A DNA stretch of 64,000 nucleotides from Adineta vaga (Eukaryota > Animalia > Rotifera): positions 13,206,001 to 13,270,000 of the forward strand of contig CP075497.1 of assembly GCA_021613535.1 (NCBI GenBank). The letters run 5' to 3'. Shown one piece after another: positions 7,776 through 25,928 of this stretch (position 1 is the stretch's first letter; every line of letters starts with the position of its first letter). The notes beneath the pieces were generated by a model. That model had not been told where the DNA came from. It searched no databases and saw only the letters and a program-made list of their open reading frames with translations. The position numbers and the translations under genes are program-made.

Positions 7776-9490
7776 ATAAAACGATTTCTTTTGTATAATA
7801 GAATGTTTTTTATTGATTTATTTAGTAAATCATCAAAGTAGATGAAGGAAAATACTTCGCAGCACAATGTTCTGCTTTACCAGAATCATCATCACTCGTC
7901 ATTCTCTCGGCTATTTATCAAATAGAAATTTATTCTCTTTCCAAATCAGTAGATGTAACTGATGCTTTTCGGACACAATGCGGTAAAGGTAAATCTGGTA
8001 GATTTAAAATCGCTAGCCATACTTTAACCAAATATATATGTTCAAAATGCTTGAAAAAACTTATAGTGACATATACATGTAGCAATCAACAAAGTAAATA
8101 ACAATTTTAACCTTACATACATCTATTTAAGTAACTTTCTTTTAGATATTTTTGGTTTGATTCAATGAAATATTGACTCTTGGATTGATAATATTGACAT
8201 AAGTAAGTTTATTTTTGATTTCCTTGATTTTATACTGTTCTTTTTTTCTTTCTTTAGATGATAGAAAGAATATTCCAGATATTGAATCCATAGAAATGTG
8301 TGGAAAGCATTGTATATGATAAGAATCACAACTGTTATCTCAAACGTACGATGAAATTAAGCGACAAAGCAAATGGTACACAAGTAATGGCTGTAGTTAA
8401 TCGTGATCGATATTGATGAACTATATTGTTTCTTATGAAACGAGACAATACGATTTCTTTTTTTGAAAGCAAATATATAGATTAGTGTTTCATAAATTGC
8501 GACAGAGATATCCAAATGATCCGTTACATCATAGAGTAAATAACTTATTTGAGAATATTTCAAAATCAATAAATGTGATGATGTTCGGTATACAATCATA
8601 AAGCATATTGTTACTTTGAAGATCATGATGAACAAGAGAAATATTGATATCTGATTTTAAGAATAAAAGTTCTACAAGAAAATTTATTGAATTTTATGAT
8701 AGATCATTTACATATTATCATGATAAATGTGAAAGCTTATTTCTCTATAAGTGAAAGTAAAGTGATGAAATATAGAAATAAAACAAGATCTTTTGTGTCC
8801 TTGTTCGTCAGTACGAAGGTAAAAATAGTGGTAAGTGTGCGTTTAAAATACAGATGCAACTAATAAGTGCAATTAAATTCTTATGAAACAGATGAGTCCT
8901 TTATAGAGAATAAATAAAAACAAGTCCTAGTAGTCTCTCAACTAAATCAACAATGCGTTGTTGTTAGACTCTTTGTGAGAAATGAAAAAAAATACATTTA
9001 ATAACGTATAACATTTGACAAACAACATGTTAATCATTTAAAATGCTTGGTGATATAGGAAACAGTCATTGCACTAGCATTATTACTTTAAACACATATA
9101 AGATCATGAACACTAATATTTGAATAAGAGGATGAAACTTCTGTTGCTTTTTCTCCGTAATGAATATGAAAAATATCAAAATGAAATATTGAGCATGGTT
9201 TTAGATAATATGATGAAAGAAATAACAGTTTTTGATTATCCTAATATGAAAATTACTTCGAATATTACTCTCGAAACATAGAAAAACAAAACTATTTTTC
9301 TGTAAAAAGTTTATTGCGTTCAAGAGGAAAGTCACACATGAAGAATAAAATAATACCTTGGTGAACACTTTTCTAATAAGGCATCATATGAATGACTTTT
9401 ATGATGCTGATAGAATGAAAAAGAAAAAGAAAAGCTAAATTATTACTTTGCATTCCATAATTATTTTGATTCATTTTCTTTTCTTCAACG

Positions 9491-13699: not shown

Positions 13700-14588
13700 A
13701 TGAATCGCACAGCTTTGGTGACCGGTGCTGCACGAGGTTTAGGACGTGCAATTGCTCTTCGTCTTGCTCAAGATGGTTTCGATGTTGCTGTTAATGATAT
13801 AGAAATTAATTCTTCTGATCTTCAAAAAGTTCAACAAGAAATCGAAACAATAGGTCGAAAGTCAATTGCTATTATTGCTGACGTCGCTATAAGTGAAAAG
13901 GTCGAAGAATTGATGCAAGATGTTCTTGGAAAATTAGGAAGTCTTGATGTATACATGTTTATTTCTAATTATTCAATTTCTTTTTCTCTTTTCATTAATT
14001 CGACAGGTAGTCATTGCAAATGCAGGAATTTGCATTGTGAAATCACTTTTAGAAACAAGTGCAGACGAATGGGATAAACTTTTTGAAGTTAACATGCGTG
14101 GTGTATTTCTTTGTTATCGAGAAGCAGCAAAAGTGATGATCAAACAAGATAAAGGAGGGAAAATTATTGGTGCTTGCAGTACTGCTGGATATAAAGGATA
14201 TCCAATGATTGGTCATTATTCAGCTACGAAATGGGGTGTACGAGGTTTAACACAAGCAGCTGCTCAAGAATGAGCTCGGTATAAAATTACAGTTAATAGT
14301 TATTGTCCAGGTATGTTTTATTCTTTTTTTTTCAAATGTTTCAAATTTAGGGAATTTTCAATAGGACTTATTGATACAACGATGACCCAAACAAGTAATG
14401 AAGAGATAGCAAAACTTCGTGGATTGACAGTAGAAGAAGTTGCGGCAAATTCCGTCAAAAATATTCCACTCGGTCGTACAGGACAACCTGATGATGTTGC
14501 AAATGTTGTTTCATTCCTTGCAAGCAAGGATTCTGATTACATTACAGGTCAAAGTATTTTAATCAATGGAGGATTATATTTTTCTTAA
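13700..14588 (+). pseudogene. Short-chain dehydrogenase (acetoin/2,3-butanediol dehydrogenase-like) with an in-frame TGA at 14271-14273
   Basis: TGAARGLG, ANAGI, YSATK motifs; introns 13949-14006 and 14311-14364; frame reads AAAQE*ARYKITVNSYCPG where Trp is expected. Confidence 0.8.
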
Positions 14589-14775
14589 TTTATAATTTAT
14601 AACTATTTTCAAATAAAATTTCTCTCTATGATAAATCGTTTTCAGACGAATTTCATTCATTATAAAATATGTAAAACAGAAAGTGATGGTGACGTCTATT
14701 AAATGTAGAAGCATATGTATGGTATTTTCTTTCTTTTTCTTTTCTGCATTATTTCATACGTTTTTATAGTCAGTT

Positions 14776-15800
14776 ATGAGCGAATCACTTTCATCGTCAA
14801 CTTCCTCCGATCTTCAAGTTCCCGATGAAAAATATCTAACACTTTTAGATGGTCGTCAATTAGCATATACTGAACAAGGTGATGTAAATAGTAATAAAAT
14901 AATGATATTCTTTCATGGAGTATTTGGTGTTGGAAGTTCATCACCTGAAGAAAAACTTTATGATGACATTAGATATCATTTTATTGCTCCTACACTTCCT
15001 GGTTGGGGAAATAGTTCACCATGGCCAGAAGATCAACGAATTTTAAATTATCCGAATGATATTCATCAATTATTATTATCTTTGAAGAAAAATCAGAAGA
15101 AACAACATCTTCGAATCACTGTTGGAGGTGGAAGTTACGGAACTGCTTTTGTTCAAATATGTTTCTTTGCATCTCCTGATATAATGCCTGAAGTTACTAA
15201 TGTTGAATCATTAGTTCTTTGTTCTGGTTTTTCTCCATTTAAATATCATAGAACATATACGACAGGAATGAGTTGGTCAAATTATGTTGCAGTTGGTGGA
15301 CCAGCAATTTATTTTCCTTCTATTCGAAGATTACTGGGAACATTTCTACAGAAGAAAGCTCGTAATATAGACGAAGCAAAGAGTTTCTTACGAGTAAATA
15401 TATTTGATTTAATGGATGCTGAAGAAAAAGTAAAATTAACTTACATAAATGGGAAGAACAGAGAAACAGACCATTAGGATCGGTTCTTGAAATGATGGCA
15501 AGAAACATGTGTATAAGTATTGCAAAAACAATGGCTGGATTTAATAGCGTTGCACATGTGTTACATTCAGATTGGGGTTATGATCCAACGAAAATGCCAG
15601 CACTACCAAAACGAAAAATATTAATTATAACTACAAAAGGAGATAAGATAGCTCATATGGAAATGTCAACTTATTTAGCTGAAACTTATCCAAATGCAGA
15701 ACTTCGAACAATTGAAGGAGGTCATTTAGCATCATTTTTTGTACTTAATGATATTATGAAAGATTGGTTAACAAGTCTTGACCAAAACTTTGACGAATAA
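14776..15800 (+). pseudogene. Alpha/beta hydrolase, frameshifted near 15430
   Basis: LLDGRQLAYTEQG, FFHGVFG, GGSYG nucleophile elbow, GDKIA, GGH; C-terminal half continues in another frame (NLHKWEEQRNRPLGSVLEMMARNM). Confidence 0.75.
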
Positions 15801-18415: not shown

Positions 18416-19535
18416 TCCTTAAAACGCATTCTTGCTATAGGATCACCTTTTTGAATGGTAATATATTCATCATCCTGGCTTACTTTGGATAAAGAAAAAA
18501 CAACGCATAAATTAACCCCTTTCCATCCCGAGATTTCCTTGCGTTCTGTACAAACACGAAAAAAATTAAAAATCTCTCTCTCTTGTCTCCAACTAGTTAT
18601 ATGTAAATCTAGTGTGATTATTATAAGAAGAACCACGTGTGGTAATTCGCTTGAACATCACATGATGTTCGTCTTCTAAGACGACGAAAGAACGAAATAA
18701 AATATTTTGCGTTCTGTATGGCATCTACGAGATGTCATGCGGAATTGAAAGGGTTAAAGATGGGTGCAGCAAGCACATAATGTACATAAGAAATGTGAAA
18801 AAGTGAAGCCGTTAAAACTAACCGTGATGCATATAACTCATTCAAGCCGACGCTATGTTGGAAAAAAGGAAAAGGATAAGCTGCATAAATAGCATATAAT
18901 ATTTCCTGCAGGCTCATATTACAAGGTATTCGTTTCGACATCGGCATCAAAAAGTTAGTACTATATTCGAGTTTTTAGCGCCTCGATTCACTCCTGTACT
19001 TGAGTAACGTCTCCAATAAGTGGAGTCGGATAGAGCTCAAAAGGGTGTGGGCGTGGGTGAGAATGTGGGTACTCCTGTCTTCTGCCATTCACAACCATGC
19101 ACACATATATACACATACCCTCAAGGGAAGGAAAAGAATGACTAATATAACAAATCGTTAGCTTCGTAGAGTGACATTTGTTGACGCTAACATATAGAAC
19201 ATGTTTCGCTCTCTAGATAACTTTTTTTCGGGTCCAGGATCTCGTTCTAGGGCACAATGTTACAGAGTATGGAATACCATTTCGGAAGAGTTTTTGTTAC
19301 TTAAAAATTAAATCTGCAATAAGTTTTCGGCTTAATTAACACTATTATGACTAAGGCTCGTATGTCGAAAAGATACAGAATAGATGAAATTAAATACACG
19401 TTGACAGTGTGCTTTGATAGCTCAGCGATCTGAGTCCTGGCTTAAGTATCACAGTGATAATTTAGTTCCATTTTTTGTTTTAGTAAGATCGAATAATTTT
19501 AGCAATCCTCATTACTACTTCACATTGATATCACG

Positions 19536-22106
19536 ATGGTTTGGGAACAAATTGATTGGTCCATCTCCGAAATAACCATCGCTTTCGGCTCTTTGCTGAT
19601 CCTAGGCTTCGTCCTCCTTCAGGTTTGTTGATTTCTGGTCTTGATCTCACATAAGTTACTCGATATTTAAAATATGAAACGCTCTCCTACATAGATGAAG
19701 CACTGGTTCAGCTTTCGCAGCACAAACAGCTGGTATCGATCGATGCCTTTCAATATTCGTGAAACCTTTTCATTCGGCGCTCTCCGCAAGGCCACCTTCT
19801 TGGGAAGGTCCTTTTCTAAGAAACATGGTCCAATTTATCGTCTCCATTCTATGTTTGAAACAGTCGTGTAAATTATGCTCGGTTGTTACTTTTCTTTCCA
19901 TAGTTCATCTTTTAATTTATTAATATAGAATTTTGGCATCGAGCGATCTTGCAGCTGAATTTTATAAGCATTCGCGAACACTACAACGGAGTCCTGAAGT
20001 TTCTTTGCTAGGCCAGGTATCGGAAACTGTCATGGGCAAGTGTATGGCGGCACTTCATGGCCAGCAATGGCAATCATGTCGGAACGCCTTCAAGACAACA
20101 TTTCTTACAAAAGCAGTACAAGATTGTTTCCAAATGATCCAGGGTGAAATAACCAAGTGGCAGGCAGAGTACGTGACGAACGGCGCCGTTCTAGATGTTC
20201 AACGAAGCAAAATCGACGAACTACCACTGAAGATCCTAGTACATGTTGTGTATGGCGATGATATCACGGAAGATGAAGTCGAGCAAGTGTTGCTGTTTGG
20301 CCGAGAACATGGGGTCATTATGGATGCATCCATGAACATCCTAGAAAACTTACCGGGGTACAAATCGCTACCTTGGAGTTTGAACGCTCGTTCAAAGAAG
20401 TTTCGTGCAGAATGGCAACGCTTCAACATGGTCAAACTGAAGAAAGCATTAAATCCGAGTGCTCAAGAACGAACCGATGTCTTTTCGATAGCGGCAAAGT
20501 ATTTTATGCAACAGGAAGATGACTTTGACTCAAAAATAGCTATGGTTTGAAGTTCTGAAAATAGATTTATTTTTTAACGAGATTTTGTATTTAGTTCTTT
20601 GATACAATCGATGAAATTTTGCTCCTAAACATCGACGTAACCTACGTTGCACTAATGAACATGCTGGTTTTTGTAGCGTCGAATGAAAGCGTTATGGCCA
20701 CACTCCGAGATGAAATCAAGAATTCGGCATCGTTCAATAGCAAGATCGAATATGACACTTTATCTAAACTGCCATATTTAGATGCTGTTTTCAAAGAATC
20801 CGTGAGACTGAGACCGCCTTTGTCGCTTAGTTTTCCAGAACGTACGACTGAACCCATGATACTGGGTGGTTATCAAATTCCAGCCGGAACGGCCGTCATG
20901 ATCGATGCTGCATCCATTAACCACGATGGTCAAGTCTGGAATCATCCGGACGATTTCGATCCGAATCGTTTTCTTGACATCCAAGAGTCTGGTATTGAAT
21001 TTCAGTACTTTAAGTATGGTCTCAATCGTAATCGTCGATGCTTGGGCTTTCGTTACGCTGAGGCCATCGTTAAACAGGTCAGTTGGGATATCTTATCTTT
21101 GGCAAAGATTGACATTGCTGACGATGAGGATCCTACGCAAGCAATGAAAAAATGGTCGAGCTGTGTCAGAGACAAGGGGCTCCCATTTTTTACGCCGTAT
21201 TCAAACTTCCCACGACTCAAAATGACCTTCGATTTTGGCGATGTGACGTCCTTAAAATTAGCGCCGGTCTTTCGTATTGACGATGGGAAATCAGCGCCTT
21301 GTTTTATTGCTGGTGAGAGAGCACTACGAGAAAAGGGCAGCGTATTGTTTGGCATGAGTTTCGGCAACAGCTACTATTCCGAAGACGTCATCAAGTCGGT
21401 CATACCGTTTCTTGGCAGCCGATTCAGTCGCATCTTCATCGATGTTCCTGATGAGTGGACTAAACACACGTACACTGCCTTGGGCTATTCCGGTAGTGAT
21501 GCTAAGAAAAAGTTGAGAAATCTGACGACTCGCTTGCGCAAACGCTGCCAGTTGGGTGTCGATATAGCCACTCAGTCTGGTATAGCACCTCGTGAGAATT
21601 TCATCTTCGTGGATTGGGGCACACATGTCGAAACTTCAAATATTTATCAAAATGCTCTGACAAAAATTAAAAAGGCGTACCAGCAAAACGAAGCATTTAG
21701 AACTGATTGTAATGCGACGACTGAAGAGGTTCTCCGGTCCCAAGGTCGAAGCCATGGTTGGGACAACAAATCATCGGCAGAGCTAGCGACGGCAATTGAA
21801 ATCGCTGTCACTTATGTTCTAATGGAATTAGCTGAAGCAGTAGCTTTTGGAGACATCGCCTCTCGTGTAACAAATGGTGGTCATGCTCCAAACACGCCGG
21901 CTGCCATGGTTTATCACCGACGATGGCTAGTTTTGGAAAAGTTTTTGAACTGCGAGTATGAAAATGAAATTTGCAAACAGCTGGTAAACAAACTTGCTCT
22001 CAATTTTGGCTTTCTCATCTTTGAAGCAAGACCAGTTAAATGTTCGAGTCATGAAGAGTTTGCTGGTGACGAAACCGAGAAGGGCACCGCAACAGTCATT
22101 AATTGA
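19536..22106 (+). CDS. Cytochrome P450 - cyclodipeptide synthase (NYH CDPS) fusion protein, about 795 aa; exons 19536-19622, 19695-19867, 19929-20544, 20595-22106
   Basis: N-terminal TM anchor; HGPIYRL; I-helix TIDEILLLNIDVT; ESVR (ExxR); FDPNRF; heme motif YGLNRNRRCLG (Cys 21039). Then, in the same exon and frame, CDPS motifs LFGMSFGNSYYS (Ser 21357, Asn 21366), YVLME (Tyr 21813, Glu 21825) and VYH (21912-21917). All three introns are GT-AG and the exon lengths sum to 2388 nt in frame. Confidence 0.9.
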
Positions 22107-22332
22107 TACTTTTCGATGGGATAACCAAGAAATGATTACATTCTTTCTTTCTTTTTTAATGAAATTAGCCTTTTCTCTTCCTTTTGATTTTTTTTTGTTG
22201 AGAGTGGTGAGGTTTAGGTATCAATTCTTTATCCACACCTACACACCTACACCCTAAAATAGATTGTGCAGGAGTCATCACTAGTTTCTATACATAATCT
22301 TTTCTAGATTTCGTTTCACCACCGTCGAAGAA

Positions 22333-23489
22333 ATGTTTGGTACAACTTTTCAAAGGAAACTTGCTCATTGCGTAGTATTAAGAGCTACGTTGTTAATACG
22401 GCGAACAAAGTCGAACCAATGTCTGCACTTTTTTCCAGGAGAAAATTCCGATCTGCGTGGTGATGGTGCCTTTCGACGAGAGCAACCACTGGGATCAACA
22501 ATGGAACTGGCTTACGCAGGAGTTCTTTCATTTCTTCGCCGAAACTACACAAGAAACTTGCAGAACGTCGATGTGGCCGTCACTGGAATTCCCTTGGATT
22601 TAGCGACCACTTATCGTCCTGGAACTCGGTTCGGACCGAAGGGAATCCGGGAAGCATCGACTCAACTGCCCGATCTCAAGTCGCATCCCGGTGGAATCGA
22701 CCTATTCGAAGATTTAGCCGTAATCGATTACGGTGACTGCTGGTTCGATGCTAGTCAACCAATGACCATTCCGAAAGCGATCGAAAATCACGCCAAGGAG
22801 ATCATCGATCAAAACGTGTTCCTTCTCTCTCTGGGTAAGAGTTGCACTTGTAACAGAAGTACAATTGCCTCTTTCTTGTTTACCTTTTAGGAGGAGATCA
22901 TTACGTGAGCTATCCATTGCTGAAAGCGCACGCCGCCAAGTATGGCAAACCATTGTCGTTGGTACAGTTCGATGCACATTGCGATACTTGGCCAAATCCA
23001 CACGAGGACAGTCTGAATCACGGCTCAATGTTTTATTACGCTGTTCGTGAAGGTTTAATCAATCCGAAGACTTCAATTCAAGTTGGTATTCGAACCTTCA
23101 ACGATGACTTCATGGGAGTGAAGGTGCTCGATGCCAGTTGGGTCCACGGACATAGCATCGATGAAACTGTACAAGAAATTCTTGGACGGATCGGCGACAA
23201 TCCAACGTATTTGACCTTCGATATCGATTGTCTCGATCCGGCCTTTGCTCCCGGAACAGGTACACCAGTCTGCGGAGGTCTCTCCACGGCTCAGGCCTTG
23301 GAAATCGTCCGTCGACTAGGATCACTGAACTTCGTCGGCATGGACATCGTCGAGGTTTCACCGCCGTTCGACCACGCCTCGATTACTAGTTTAGCTGCAG
23401 CCACCCTCGCCTATCAATTTTTACTTTTACTCAGAAACAAAAAGATTCTCAGCAAAAATTTTCCATTTGTCCCTAAGTCAGCTCAGTAA
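22333..23489 (+). CDS. speB: Agmatinase-like ureohydrolase, bacterial SpeB type (intron 22835-22890)
   Basis: GIPLD...RPGTRFGPKGIR, spliced LGGDH, FDAHCD, FDIDCLDPAFAPGTGTP, DIVEVSPPFD; exact 5' structure uncertain. Confidence 0.9.
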
Positions 23490-25062
23490 AGATCACATCC
23501 ACTTACCCGCGAACTCTCGCCCAAACTAAACAATGTGATTAGAGAAATTAATGAGAATTTATTTCACAATTTAATTAAATGACATGATTAATTTAAAAAG
23601 TTATTTTTTAGCAAATATATTCGCAAATACACCACTCATTTCAATGTTTTCCATCTTGAGGGTGGGTGTGGGTGTAAGTCAGTATCTCTATCGATATTCA
23701 TCCTTACATTCATTCTCAACGTCAGGCTCACCTACACCCACCTTTTTATTTTTCAATAAAACTTTAGTACAAATAGTCTTTATTATTCTGAAAAGAAAAT
23801 TTCATTTCAATTCCAACACGTCATTTTTAATTACAAACATCAATAGAATATAAAATCATTTGTTCTTATATTTTATTCATATCAAACACAATATCATGTC
23901 TTCTCGGAAAAATTATTTATGCAATTTAAATCTCTTTGCACCAACGTTTAATAATAATGAACAAGAAACTGTTGAACAACGTTGATGGAATATTATTGGA
24001 ACACGAATTTTTATTGTATTTCTTATATTAATTCTCTTTGCTACTATGGTCTTACTTTATCTCTAATGAATCAAACAATAAAAATCATCATAGATCATCT
24101 TCCAACAGACGCTAAATGTGTATGTTCTCAAATTTCGATACCTTATAGAAAATTTACATCGATTTACGTCAATTTTCATTCGATAGACTTTTGAACTTAT
24201 GGTGTATGTGCTCAATTTCGATCACTTGTTGTATTTTGTCGATTATCTACAAGAGGATGGTCTAATATGTAACTGTCGATTTCAAATTTGTATAATAAGA
24301 CTTCACATATATAGTCGATAAATTTGAAGAAATTGTTAAAAAAAAATTTTGTTTTATTCTATGTGATGATGTAACATTTGATAACATACATTAATAAAAT
24401 GGTGTTACATTTCTTTCTATCAAGTCTTCTTTTCATATTTTATTCACTTCGTTAATTATATAACTCGCATGAAATAGAACAGAACATATCGAAACGTGAT
24501 AGAATGAAACAGAAAGAGAAAGAGAAAGAGAAAAGATATATTCTATTATAACAAAATAAATATACATTTACATTATATGATTGTATTCAAATTTGAGCTA
24601 TAATCATATCGCATTAGGGTAATGAACAGATTGAGGATCTATAAGTGAGAATATAAATTAGAGATCAGTCATTCGAATAAAAATTATCTAAGATATAGTT
24701 TATTTTTAAGTTATAAAAAATTTAAATAGAAATAAGTCTAGATAGATATCTCTACATTAATCGTCTTTCTTCTATTTCTTTTTTGTAAATTCAAATAGAT
24801 TTGATACTGAATAGTTTGTTTCTAAATTTCGATTGAGATGAAATTGTTTGTTACAAAGTATGTAGATGATTAAGGTCATTATAAGTAAAAGCACGTGTTC
24901 TTTTCATATTAAACATGAGAGAAAGATAAAAGCACAAAATAAGTATTTATGAAACAATAGAACGGGTAAATTTTGTATATATACTCTCAACTGATAAGGG
25001 GAGAAAAGTTCATATTGTTATAATTAACATTTTTATTCTTTAGAAATATAGATACTTTAATT

Positions 25063-25928
25063 ATGGATGATAAAACATTGCATACTCAAGATTATTTAAC
25101 TGAATTCGGTACAAATGATTATCTCGGTGCATATACACGCTTTAAAACTATTCCATGGTTTATGGAACATATTAAAGGATTGGTACGTGTTTTTGTTAAG
25201 AACAGTTCTCATCTTGGTCATGAACGAGCTCTTGAATTTGGTGGTGGACCAACACTTGTCTCATCTTTTGTAATTGCACAATATGTTCAATCAATTACAT
25301 TTTCTGAATATGTACCAAACAATTTGAAGGCAATAAATGATTGGGTCAATCAAGTCGAGGATGCTTTTGACTGGACAGATGTATTTAACTTTATCATCGA
25401 ACAATATCATCAACAGGTTAGTTAGTTGTCTGTATCATTCTTTGCTGCGTGATTTTAATAGTCTATATTATTTAGACAGGTATCACGCTCTCATTATCAG
25501 AATGTGAACAACGTTTACGTACAGATCTTCAACGAGGCGGTGTGCTACAAATCGGTGATGTGAATAAACAATCTGGTTGTGCTGTACTCGATAATCCAGC
25601 TAATTATAACCAATTTGATATTATTCTTAGCTCATTCTGTCTCGAAGATGCTTGTCTTACAAAAGAAACATACGAAAAGACTGTCGAACGACTGTGTACT
25701 CTGCTAAAACCGGGTGGTTTTCTTGTTTTAGCACATGGACGAAATCAAACATTTTATTATGTCGCCGACAAACGATTTTTCGCTCAATATATGAATGAAC
25801 AATCTGCACGTGAGACACTGGAAAGAATGAAATTAATCAATATTCAAAGTTCAGCTGTCGATCGAACACCTAATATGTATAGTGATTCAGATGGTTATTT
25901 TATTGTATGTGGATATAAAATGAAATAA
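25063..25928 (+). CDS. NNMT/PNMT/INMT-family SAM-dependent methyltransferase (intron 25417-25475)
   Basis: LEFGGGPT, ITFSEYVPNN, AFDWT, FDIILSSFCLE, LLKPGGFLV, FYYV motifs. Confidence 0.85.

Follow-up and report, generated by a model that had tools for sequence, protein, structure and literature searches.

A spliced and transcribed gene of the bdelloid rotifer Adineta vaga for a predicted cytochrome P450–cyclodipeptide synthase fusion protein, with related halves in a coral gene pair

In the bacterial two-gene operons Rv2275/CYP121 and YvmC/CypX a cyclodipeptide synthase (CDPS) makes a diketopiperazine and a cytochrome P450 (P450) tailors it. A bacterial protein combining both functions in a single chain is also known, namely the protein of the NYH-type 'CDPS 71', which consists of an N-terminal CDPS and a C-terminal P450 of 410 amino acids, and its isolated CDPS domain is active and makes cWY (Gondry et al., 2018; PMC5816076). 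The first eukaryotic CDPSs were found by Aravind's group and were all stand-alone proteins without fused domains (PMC2922099); NYH-type CDPS sequences of coral, sea anemone and marine worm are listed by Gondry et al. (PMC5816076), where Nvec-CDPS2 of Nematostella vectensis is cited as an animal NYH CDPS (Seguin, 2011). Here, a stretch of 64,000 nucleotides of the bdelloid rotifer Adineta vaga (contig CP075497.1, positions 13,206,001 to 13,270,000, forward strand; hereafter the window, whose numbering is used throughout) was analyzed, which carries at 19536-22106 (+) a gene for a protein of 795 amino acids with a P450 half followed by a CDPS half. We estimate at roughly 70% the probability that this is a genuine, expressed bdelloid gene for a bifunctional P450-CDPS enzyme, and that the unit is shared with a gene pair of corals.

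Like the bacterial CDPS 71 fusion, the rotifer protein unites a predicted NYH-type CDPS with a P450 in a single polypeptide. However, the CDPS comes first in the bacterial protein, whereas in the rotifer the P450 (residues 67-480) precedes the CDPS (residues 535-705), and the rotifer P450 is predicted to be anchored, resembles microsomal CYP17, CYP51 and CYP76AH, and is encoded by a gene with introns. The operons Rv2275/CYP121 and YvmC/CypX follow the same logic as the rotifer fusion, but with separate genes and soluble bacterial P450s: the rotifer P450 half scored 27 bits against the model of bacterial CDPS-associated P450s (TIGR04538; cut-off 500), and its solved relatives are microsomal, so that an origin from this bacterial group was rejected. 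The CDPSs of Nematostella, other cnidarians and annelids share with the rotifer domain that they are animal-encoded and of the NYH type, but are stand-alone by description (PMC2922099). The fusion is thus new relative to known fusions in its domain order, P450 class, membrane anchoring and animal host, and it is newly observed that corals keep both halves as a gene pair. Full-text literature searches brought up neither a paper on a rotifer CDPS nor one on a protein with a P450 followed by a CDPS; among the papers listed in the search on corals, Nematostella and P450s, CDPSs were mentioned only by Gondry et al. (2018), and the words 'cyclodipeptide' and 'CDPS' are absent from a paper on biosynthetic horizontal gene transfer in bdelloids (PMC11258130). 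An earlier reading of the DNA letters alone (hereafter the sequence-only reading) had known of no characterized example of such an enzyme. The novelty is narrower, given the published bacterial fusion in the opposite order (PMC5816076), the known cnidarian CDPSs and the presence of the rotifer fusion proteins in GenBank and UniProt, uncharacterized and named as hypothetical or as 'Cytochrome P450'.

The gene is located on chromosome 6 of A. vaga, on a 13.9-Mb contig of a haploid assembly (six contigs, 100.8 Mb). Among 5.8 billion proteins searched, the 795-residue GenBank entry 'hypothetical protein I4U23_031446 [Adineta vaga]' (P0001; exons 19536-19622, 19695-19867, 19929-20544 and 20595-22106) was 100% identical to the product of the four coding exons; P0001 served as the sequence for all analyses of the spliced protein, while exon 4 was also scanned alone. 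Contigs of four public runs, which bear the label 'RNA?' only and give no measure of expression level, were aligned to positions 19450-25449 (6,000 letters). X1 and X13, runs of two different studies, each yielded one intron-free contig (2,670 and 2,713 nt, respectively) with aligned blocks at 19484-19620, 19693-19867, 19929-20543 and from 20594 to 22242 (X1) or 22274 (X13). All three joints are of the GT..AG type and none falls within exon 4, whereas the genomic-type run X12 (depth about 100) retains the introns. Since exactly the three introns are lost from the X1 and X13 contigs, these are of mRNA origin, and since exon 4 is free of joints, they cross the P450/CDPS junction uninterrupted, passing 21050-21400 unspliced. 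Moreover, both contigs carry 90-101 extra letters 5' of position 19484, the final 30 of which match 18924-18953, followed by GTTAGT in the genome; the gene therefore has an additional non-coding 5' exon of at least 90-101 nt in the contigs, of which the last 30 nt are mapped, and a further intron of 530 nt. Taken together, these data show a spliced, transcribed eukaryotic gene that produces one message for both domains, with the following features:

18924-18953 (+): 3' end of the non-coding 5' exon; 30-nt consensus of the contig loose ends with 1 mismatch (0 expected by chance), donor GT at 18954
19484-19535 (+): 5' untranslated part of the first coding exon; the X1 and X13 alignments begin at 19484, acceptor AG at 19482-19483
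19536-19622 (+): coding exon 1, residues 1-29, with start codon ATG at 19536 and putative hydrophobic anchor (residues 10-28); sequence, contigs, hydrophobicity and model
19623-19694 (+): intron 1, 72 nt, GT..AG; joint in X1 and X13, retained in the DNA run X12, 83% identical in Rotaria socialis
19695-19867 (+): coding exon 2, P450 N-terminal region with the GRSFSKKHGPIY motif common to coral P450s; contigs and alignment
19868-19928 (+): intron 2, 61 nt, GT..AG; contig joints
19929-20544 (+): coding exon 3, middle part of the P450; Pfam p450 at 0.0038 on the exon alone and 1e-46 at full length, contig joint
20545-20594 (+): intron 3, 50 nt, GT..AG; joint in X1, X5 and X13
20595-21233 (+): P450 part of exon 4, residues 293-505; I-helix DEILLLNIDVT (298-308), ExxR (360-363), PNRF (415-418), heme Cys441 (codon 21039-21041) and C-terminal strand
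21234-21275 (+): linker of about 14 residues from the last P450 strand to the CDPS N-terminus, without intron and without stop
21276-22019 (+): CDPS domain in exon 4, residues 520-767; Ser547 (codon 21357-21359), Asn550, Tyr699, Glu703, Tyr732 and His733
22020-22106 (+): C-terminal tail (28 residues, low model confidence) and stop codon (22104-22106, TGA/TAA-type context); model, dN/dS above 1 on few sites
22107-22274 (+): 3' untranslated region, at least to here; X13 ends at 22274 and X1 at 22242

The sequence-only reading had placed the gene at 19536-22106 with three canonical introns, a transmembrane anchor and one exon (20595-22106) open from the P450 into the CDPS, and had concluded that it is a eukaryotic gene rather than bacterial contamination. 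All of this agrees with the data, as exon 4 stays open over its 503 codons and holds the second half of the P450 and the CDPS; the non-coding exon ending at 18953 and spliced to 19484 had been missed. The only oddity that could suggest an artefact, i.e., misassembly, contamination or a merged annotation, is that G+C is raised locally (0.44 as compared to about 0.30). Such an explanation is extremely improbable, as both halves share one uninterrupted exon whose junction is crossed by transcript contigs of two studies, the locus sits among intron-bearing genes on a chromosome-scale contig, and the same architecture recurs in several assemblies of R. socialis and in a third sequence (P0003). The haploid A. 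vaga assembly contains one CDPS gene.

Orthologues of 795 amino acids were found in R. socialis in several variants across several assemblies (85-87% identity), and the partial sequence P0003, which has the same architecture, is 82% identical. The R. socialis locus (L002) has four coding exons with intron positions as in A. vaga. Between the two species the ratio of non-synonymous to synonymous substitution rates (dN/dS) of exon 4 was 0.185, with values of 0.20 for the P450 part, 0.13 for the linker and 0.14 for the CDPS part; the low values in both parts indicate that the P450 and CDPS halves are each under purifying selection, and dN/dS exceeds 1 in the 28-residue tail alone, where few sites are available. 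The synonymous divergence (dS) was 0.33, the internal introns are 69-85% identical and the DNA 88% overall. Similarity of the DNA extends from 19441 to 22111 (3791-6472 of L002), thus from 43 nt 5' of the acceptor in the 5' untranslated region to 5 nt 3' of the stop codon, and the flanks do not align. This divergence is lower than expected for two bdelloid families. Constraint, recent transfer between bdelloids or cross-contamination may each account for the unexpectedly high similarity. A metagenome scan with exon 4 returned one weak P450 match and no bdelloid orthologue.

The CDPS half was recognized in exon 4 alone by Pfam CDPS (PF16715; 4e-21) and by TIGR04539 'tRNA-dependent cyclodipeptide synthase' (2e-27, 96 bits; cut-off 45), and in P0001 by Pfam CDPS at residues 535-705 (8e-21, 75-76 bits; cut-off 27). 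The closest solved structures by sequence were BtCDPS (2e-9), the CDPS of S. haemolyticus, YvmC and AlbC. When 1.84 billion cluster representatives were searched exhaustively with HMMER, 271 relatives were found; outside the bdelloid cluster (86% identity) the closest are stand-alone proteins of about 210-240 amino acids with 31-36% identity, the named ones among them coming from metagenome-assembled genomes of DPANN archaea and from metagenomes, and among proteins of 437-1391 amino acids a similar CDPS domain occurs only in bdelloid proteins. In an alignment of 58 sequences (A1) Asn550, Trp633, Phe660, Glu703 and Tyr732 are invariant, and the nucleophile Ser547, Tyr699 and His733 are kept in the rotifer. 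The motifs GMSFGNSYY (with Ser547), YVLME (699-703) and VYH (731-733), from which the sequence-only reading had proposed an NYH-type catalytic set, are present as quoted, and in the HMMER alignment Ser547 and Asn550 correspond to S37 and N40 of AlbC, while Tyr699 and Glu703 of YVLME stand for its Tyr178 and Glu182. Asn550 and Tyr732-His733 fit the positions Asn40, Tyr202 and His203 (AlbC numbering) that define the NYH subfamily (PMC7613923; PMC5816076); with Ser547, Asn550, Tyr699, Glu703 and Tyr732-His733 all in place, the CDPS half is assigned to the NYH type. The two halves were modelled separately. The AlphaFold model of the CDPS half, for which the 58-sequence alignment was used, reached a mean predicted local distance difference test score (pLDDT) of 90.3, and in a Foldseek comparison with the PDB the 48 best matches were all CDPS structures (E down to 2e-10; TM-score 0.78-0.84 by target length), NYH ranked over XYP enzymes, followed by tyrosyl-tRNA synthetases. 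Judged by catalytic set and model, this half is a tRNA-dependent cyclodipeptide synthase of the NYH type, which would be expected to be active.

It is nonetheless conceivable that the CDPS-like half transfers the aminoacyl group to another acceptor or makes a linear dipeptide, without a free cyclodipeptide. In line with this are the identity of only 31-36% to any other CDPS, the long branch, the uncommon acidity of the first pocket and an insertion of 9 residues in front of the YH motif which, like the disordered 28-residue tail, is specific to the rotifer. As the residues for both acyl transfers and for cyclization are present (Ser, Asn, Tyr-x3-Glu and Tyr-His) and the fold is that of a complete CDPS, we regard this as improbable. 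Further observations were made among the homologues. In one clade (P0081, P0102 and P0112 of alignment A1) Cys replaces the catalytic Ser in the motif AICLNNGYY, and the CDPS query aligns at 8-9 separate places in each of P0111 (1158 amino acids) and P0128 (1291 amino acids), which gives them the look of proteins with repeated CDPS-like segments. P0066, a stand-alone CDPS of 278 amino acids encoded on an AT-rich, eukaryote-like 6-kb contig (L014 5045-5881), groups closest to the bdelloid CDPS clade, with weak support, and also has an insertion before the YH motif; no P450 was found beside it in the 5 kb upstream on this contig.

With respect to substrates, the first pocket of CDPSs is described by positions 33, 35, 65, 67, 119, 185, 186 and 200 of AlbC (PMC5816076), which correspond in the rotifer to Leu543, Gly545, Asp575, Pro577, Trp633, Glu706, Ala707 and Met730, positions 33-119 being mapped through the AlbC alignment and positions 185, 186 and 200 by their offset to Glu182 and Tyr202. 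Relatives including the coral enzyme have W, I, M or F at AlbC position 65 and F or Y at position 185, whereas the rotifer has Asp575 and Glu706. In ParcuCDPS a Glu three positions after the catalytic Glu is needed for the use of histidine (PMC7613923), and basic residues are seldom part of CDPS products (cPR, cHP and cHE; PMC5816076). The acidic residues at positions that are hydrophobic in the relatives tentatively suggest that the first substrate may be a basic or polar amino acid.

The P450 half was detected in exon 4 alone by Pfam p450 (PF00067; 6e-33, profile positions 275-450 of 462) and in P0001 at residues 67-480 (1e-46, 160 bits; cut-off 22.8). The solved structures closest by sequence are the eukaryotic microsomal or mitochondrial P450s CYP76AH, CYP21, CYP24, CYP17 and CYP51, and those closest by fold are CYP17A1 and CYP51 (TM-score about 0.75; pLDDT 77.9 and predicted TM-score 0.83 for the model). 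In an alignment with 26 P450s (A3) E360, R363, P415, R417, R439 and heme Cys441 are invariant, 28 P450s being compared in all. Residues 10-28 form the most hydrophobic 19-residue window of the whole protein and were modelled as a single long N-terminal helix. Sequence and model thus point to an N-terminally anchored P450 of the class-II (microsomal-like) type. No closer paralogue of this half, i.e., none above 27% identity, was found in the A. vaga genome, and a feature search of the ESM Atlas returned generic P450 clusters only, all below 0.9. Reductase-type flavin adenine dinucleotide (FAD) domains do occur in the A. vaga genome. Elsewhere in the assembly, beyond the window, the P450 query and the reductase FAD domain both hit open frames of 1036-1038 amino acids (G000:C1:14336340-14336867, C1:14684735-14685259 and C2:1746173-1746736), which resemble BM3-type P450-reductase fusions with few introns.

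The P450 half has its nearest relatives exclusively among cnidarians, in Porites (E 1e-60, with 32% identity across 87% of the query) and in Acropora, Montipora and Dendronephthya, whereas the next, non-coral matches had E values of about 1e-11 (63 bits as compared to 224 for coral). Residues 1-520 of P0001 matched the Porites lobata P450 with E 8e-72 and 32% identity over 450 residues, and the coral P450s and the rotifer protein have in common an odd I-helix, the GRxLSKKHGxIY motif and an FFTPY C-terminus; by sequence, the P450 halves of rotifer and corals clearly belong to one family. In P. lobata about 760 bp separate the P450 gene (L013 10001-18837, +) from a divergent gene for 235 amino acids (8414-9243, -) with a Pfam CDPS match, and P450 and CDPS genes of P. 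lutea are in the same head-to-head arrangement (L013, L015). Exon 2 of the Porites CDPS gene matched the rotifer domain with 32% identity (4e-23). The Porites pair is therefore similar to the rotifer gene in both halves, including the I-helix DEILLLN(I/V)DV, FFTPY and the NYH-like CDPS, and both are animal; it differs in that two divergent genes (CDPS of 235 and P450 of 499 amino acids) stand in place of one, that the coral CDPS has Phe and Phe at the positions of Asp575 and Glu706, and that the coral Cys loop is canonical. Given that kin of the P450 half stand beside a stand-alone CDPS in Porites, the rotifer protein would be a Rosetta-stone fusion of that pair. The automatic names given by NCBI to the coral P450s (verC-like, tcpC-like, asaD) point to fungal P450s, and we take verC and tcpC to belong to fungal diketopiperazine clusters and asaD to the aspergillic-acid cluster. 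Common descent of the CDPS halves was addressed with quick trees and the approximately unbiased (AU) test: the AU test did not reject a tree constrained to a clade of bdelloid and cnidarian CDPSs (p 0.94). Its log-likelihood was 55 units better than that of the quick tree without constraint, which mainly reflects how shallow the quick search was. A common ancestor of the rotifer and coral CDPS halves is allowed by these trees, but receives no positive support from them.

Following this, we propose that the N-terminal helix would anchor the P450 in the membrane of the endoplasmic reticulum (ER), with both domains cytosolic by analogy to microsomal P450s. The cytosolic CDPS half would bind two aminoacyl-tRNAs, the first of which would acylate Ser547, while the second would give a dipeptidyl-enzyme from which a 2,5-diketopiperazine is released, in a ping-pong mechanism as in AlbC. 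The P450 half, supplied with electrons by the NADPH-P450 reductase of the cell, would then modify the diketopiperazine on the same polypeptide. That the P450 acts on the CDPS product is argued for by the fusion together with the coral gene pair, and the proposal of the sequence-only reading that the protein makes and then oxidizes a cyclodipeptide is strengthened, by analogy, by the CDPS/P450 pair of corals; a role in chemical defence, which that reading had considered possible, would be conjectural. The two activities may accordingly represent one conserved functional unit, encoded by the head-to-head pair in Porites and turned into a single gene in bdelloids.

Several observations weigh against a bifunctional enzyme shared with corals. 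The coral pairing was observed in one genus, Porites; outside it, exact-product look-ups of the Montipora, Dendronephthya and three Acropora P450s (P0007, P0008, P0220, P0221 and P0224) gave no record, the P450 P0222 matched only an intron-free contig of 3 kb and the cnidarian-like CDPS representatives only contigs of about 1 kb. The CDPS tree is essentially a star, with the bdelloid and cnidarian clades in the same unresolved group. The ER location and cytosolic orientation are suggested by the P450 class, and pocket positions 185, 186 and 200 were assigned by motif offset and not by structure. Within the P450 half, the I-helix LNIDVT keeps the Asp but has Val307 in place of the oxygen-activating Thr, as in all coral relatives, and the canonical pattern with Thr, (A/G)Gx(D/E)T(T/S), was not found in it; the Cys loop, compared to FxxGxRxCxG, keeps the Cys, the Arg at -2 and the Gly at +2, but has one extra residue and an Arg at the usual Gly-4. 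This altered loop is identical in both full-length bdelloid sequences (P0001 and P0002), with a local pLDDT of 54-60.

The last two features, together with the low model confidence of the loop and the indirect assignment of the P450 substrate, could mean that the CDPS half is active while the P450 half is an anchor or scaffold or performs non-canonical chemistry on another substrate. Active P450s without the I-helix Thr include EryF, CYP74 and P450nor. Within the P450 superfamily the Val is therefore not disqualifying; the sequence suggests non-standard oxygen chemistry, and the missing Thr may, speculatively, imply reactions other than plain hydroxylation, e.g., coupling or substrate-assisted oxidation. 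Furthermore, the dN/dS of the P450 part is about as low as that of the CDPS part, the ExxR and PERF-type motifs and the Cys are intact, and the odd I-helix is a family trait of coral P450s that also stand beside a CDPS. A P450 half without a role on the diketopiperazine is thus unlikely, and the bifunctional enzyme remains the preferred reading.

A more far-reaching and clearly less probable, albeit possible, extension of the bifunctional enzyme is that it represents an old animal P450 and CDPS pathway and no recent import from bacteria. The pathway would have come down from an early metazoan and been lost outside cnidarians and bdelloids, or else have been transferred between eukaryotes. In bdelloids the two genes would then have merged to encode a single ER-anchored enzyme, and its first pocket, with Asp575 and Glu706, would have been adapted to a basic amino acid, e.g., His or Arg. 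If true, the product would be an oxidized basic diketopiperazine of a kind not known so far in animals, maybe processed further by the enzymes of two adjacent genes, an agmatinase-type ureohydrolase and an NNMT-type N-methyltransferase.

As for the surroundings in the window, a ureohydrolase gene is located directly downstream and is represented by contigs of its own (22306-24302, +; coding sequence 22333-22833 and 22890-23489, intron 22834-22889). Its product belongs to the arginase family and resembles bacterial SpeB agmatinase (Pfam Arginase 1e-60; NF002564 281 and 120 bits over its two exons, cut-off 302), with about 50 extra N-terminal residues. It is followed by a two-exon gene for an N-methyltransferase of the NNMT/PNMT/TEMT family (25063-25416 and 25542-25928, +; Pfam 2e-15 and 3e-16), and transcript contigs leave the genome at 25416, which fits the intron in this gene. 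Between the two, at 23850-24250, the summed contig depth of X12 goes up from about 100 to 270-370, and partial contigs and loose ends are numerous, suggesting a repeated element. Upstream, at 13700-15800 (+), a short-chain dehydrogenase (adh_short 2e-16) and an alpha/beta hydrolase are encoded, both with short introns.

Animal-encoded non-ribosomal peptide chemistry is rare, and the animal CDPSs known in the literature searched are cnidarian and annelid, with one characterized (Nematostella). The fusion in a rotifer and the pair in a second phylum constitute a Rosetta-stone argument that the orphan P450 family of corals and rotifers acts on CDPS products, and through this link the function of the coral gene pair becomes testable. 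As a diketopiperazine catalyst the protein would be compact, two-step and eukaryotic in origin, and may show an unusual specificity for a basic residue. It would also extend the biosynthetic repertoire that bdelloids acquired horizontally (PMC11258130) by a tRNA-dependent route to peptides.

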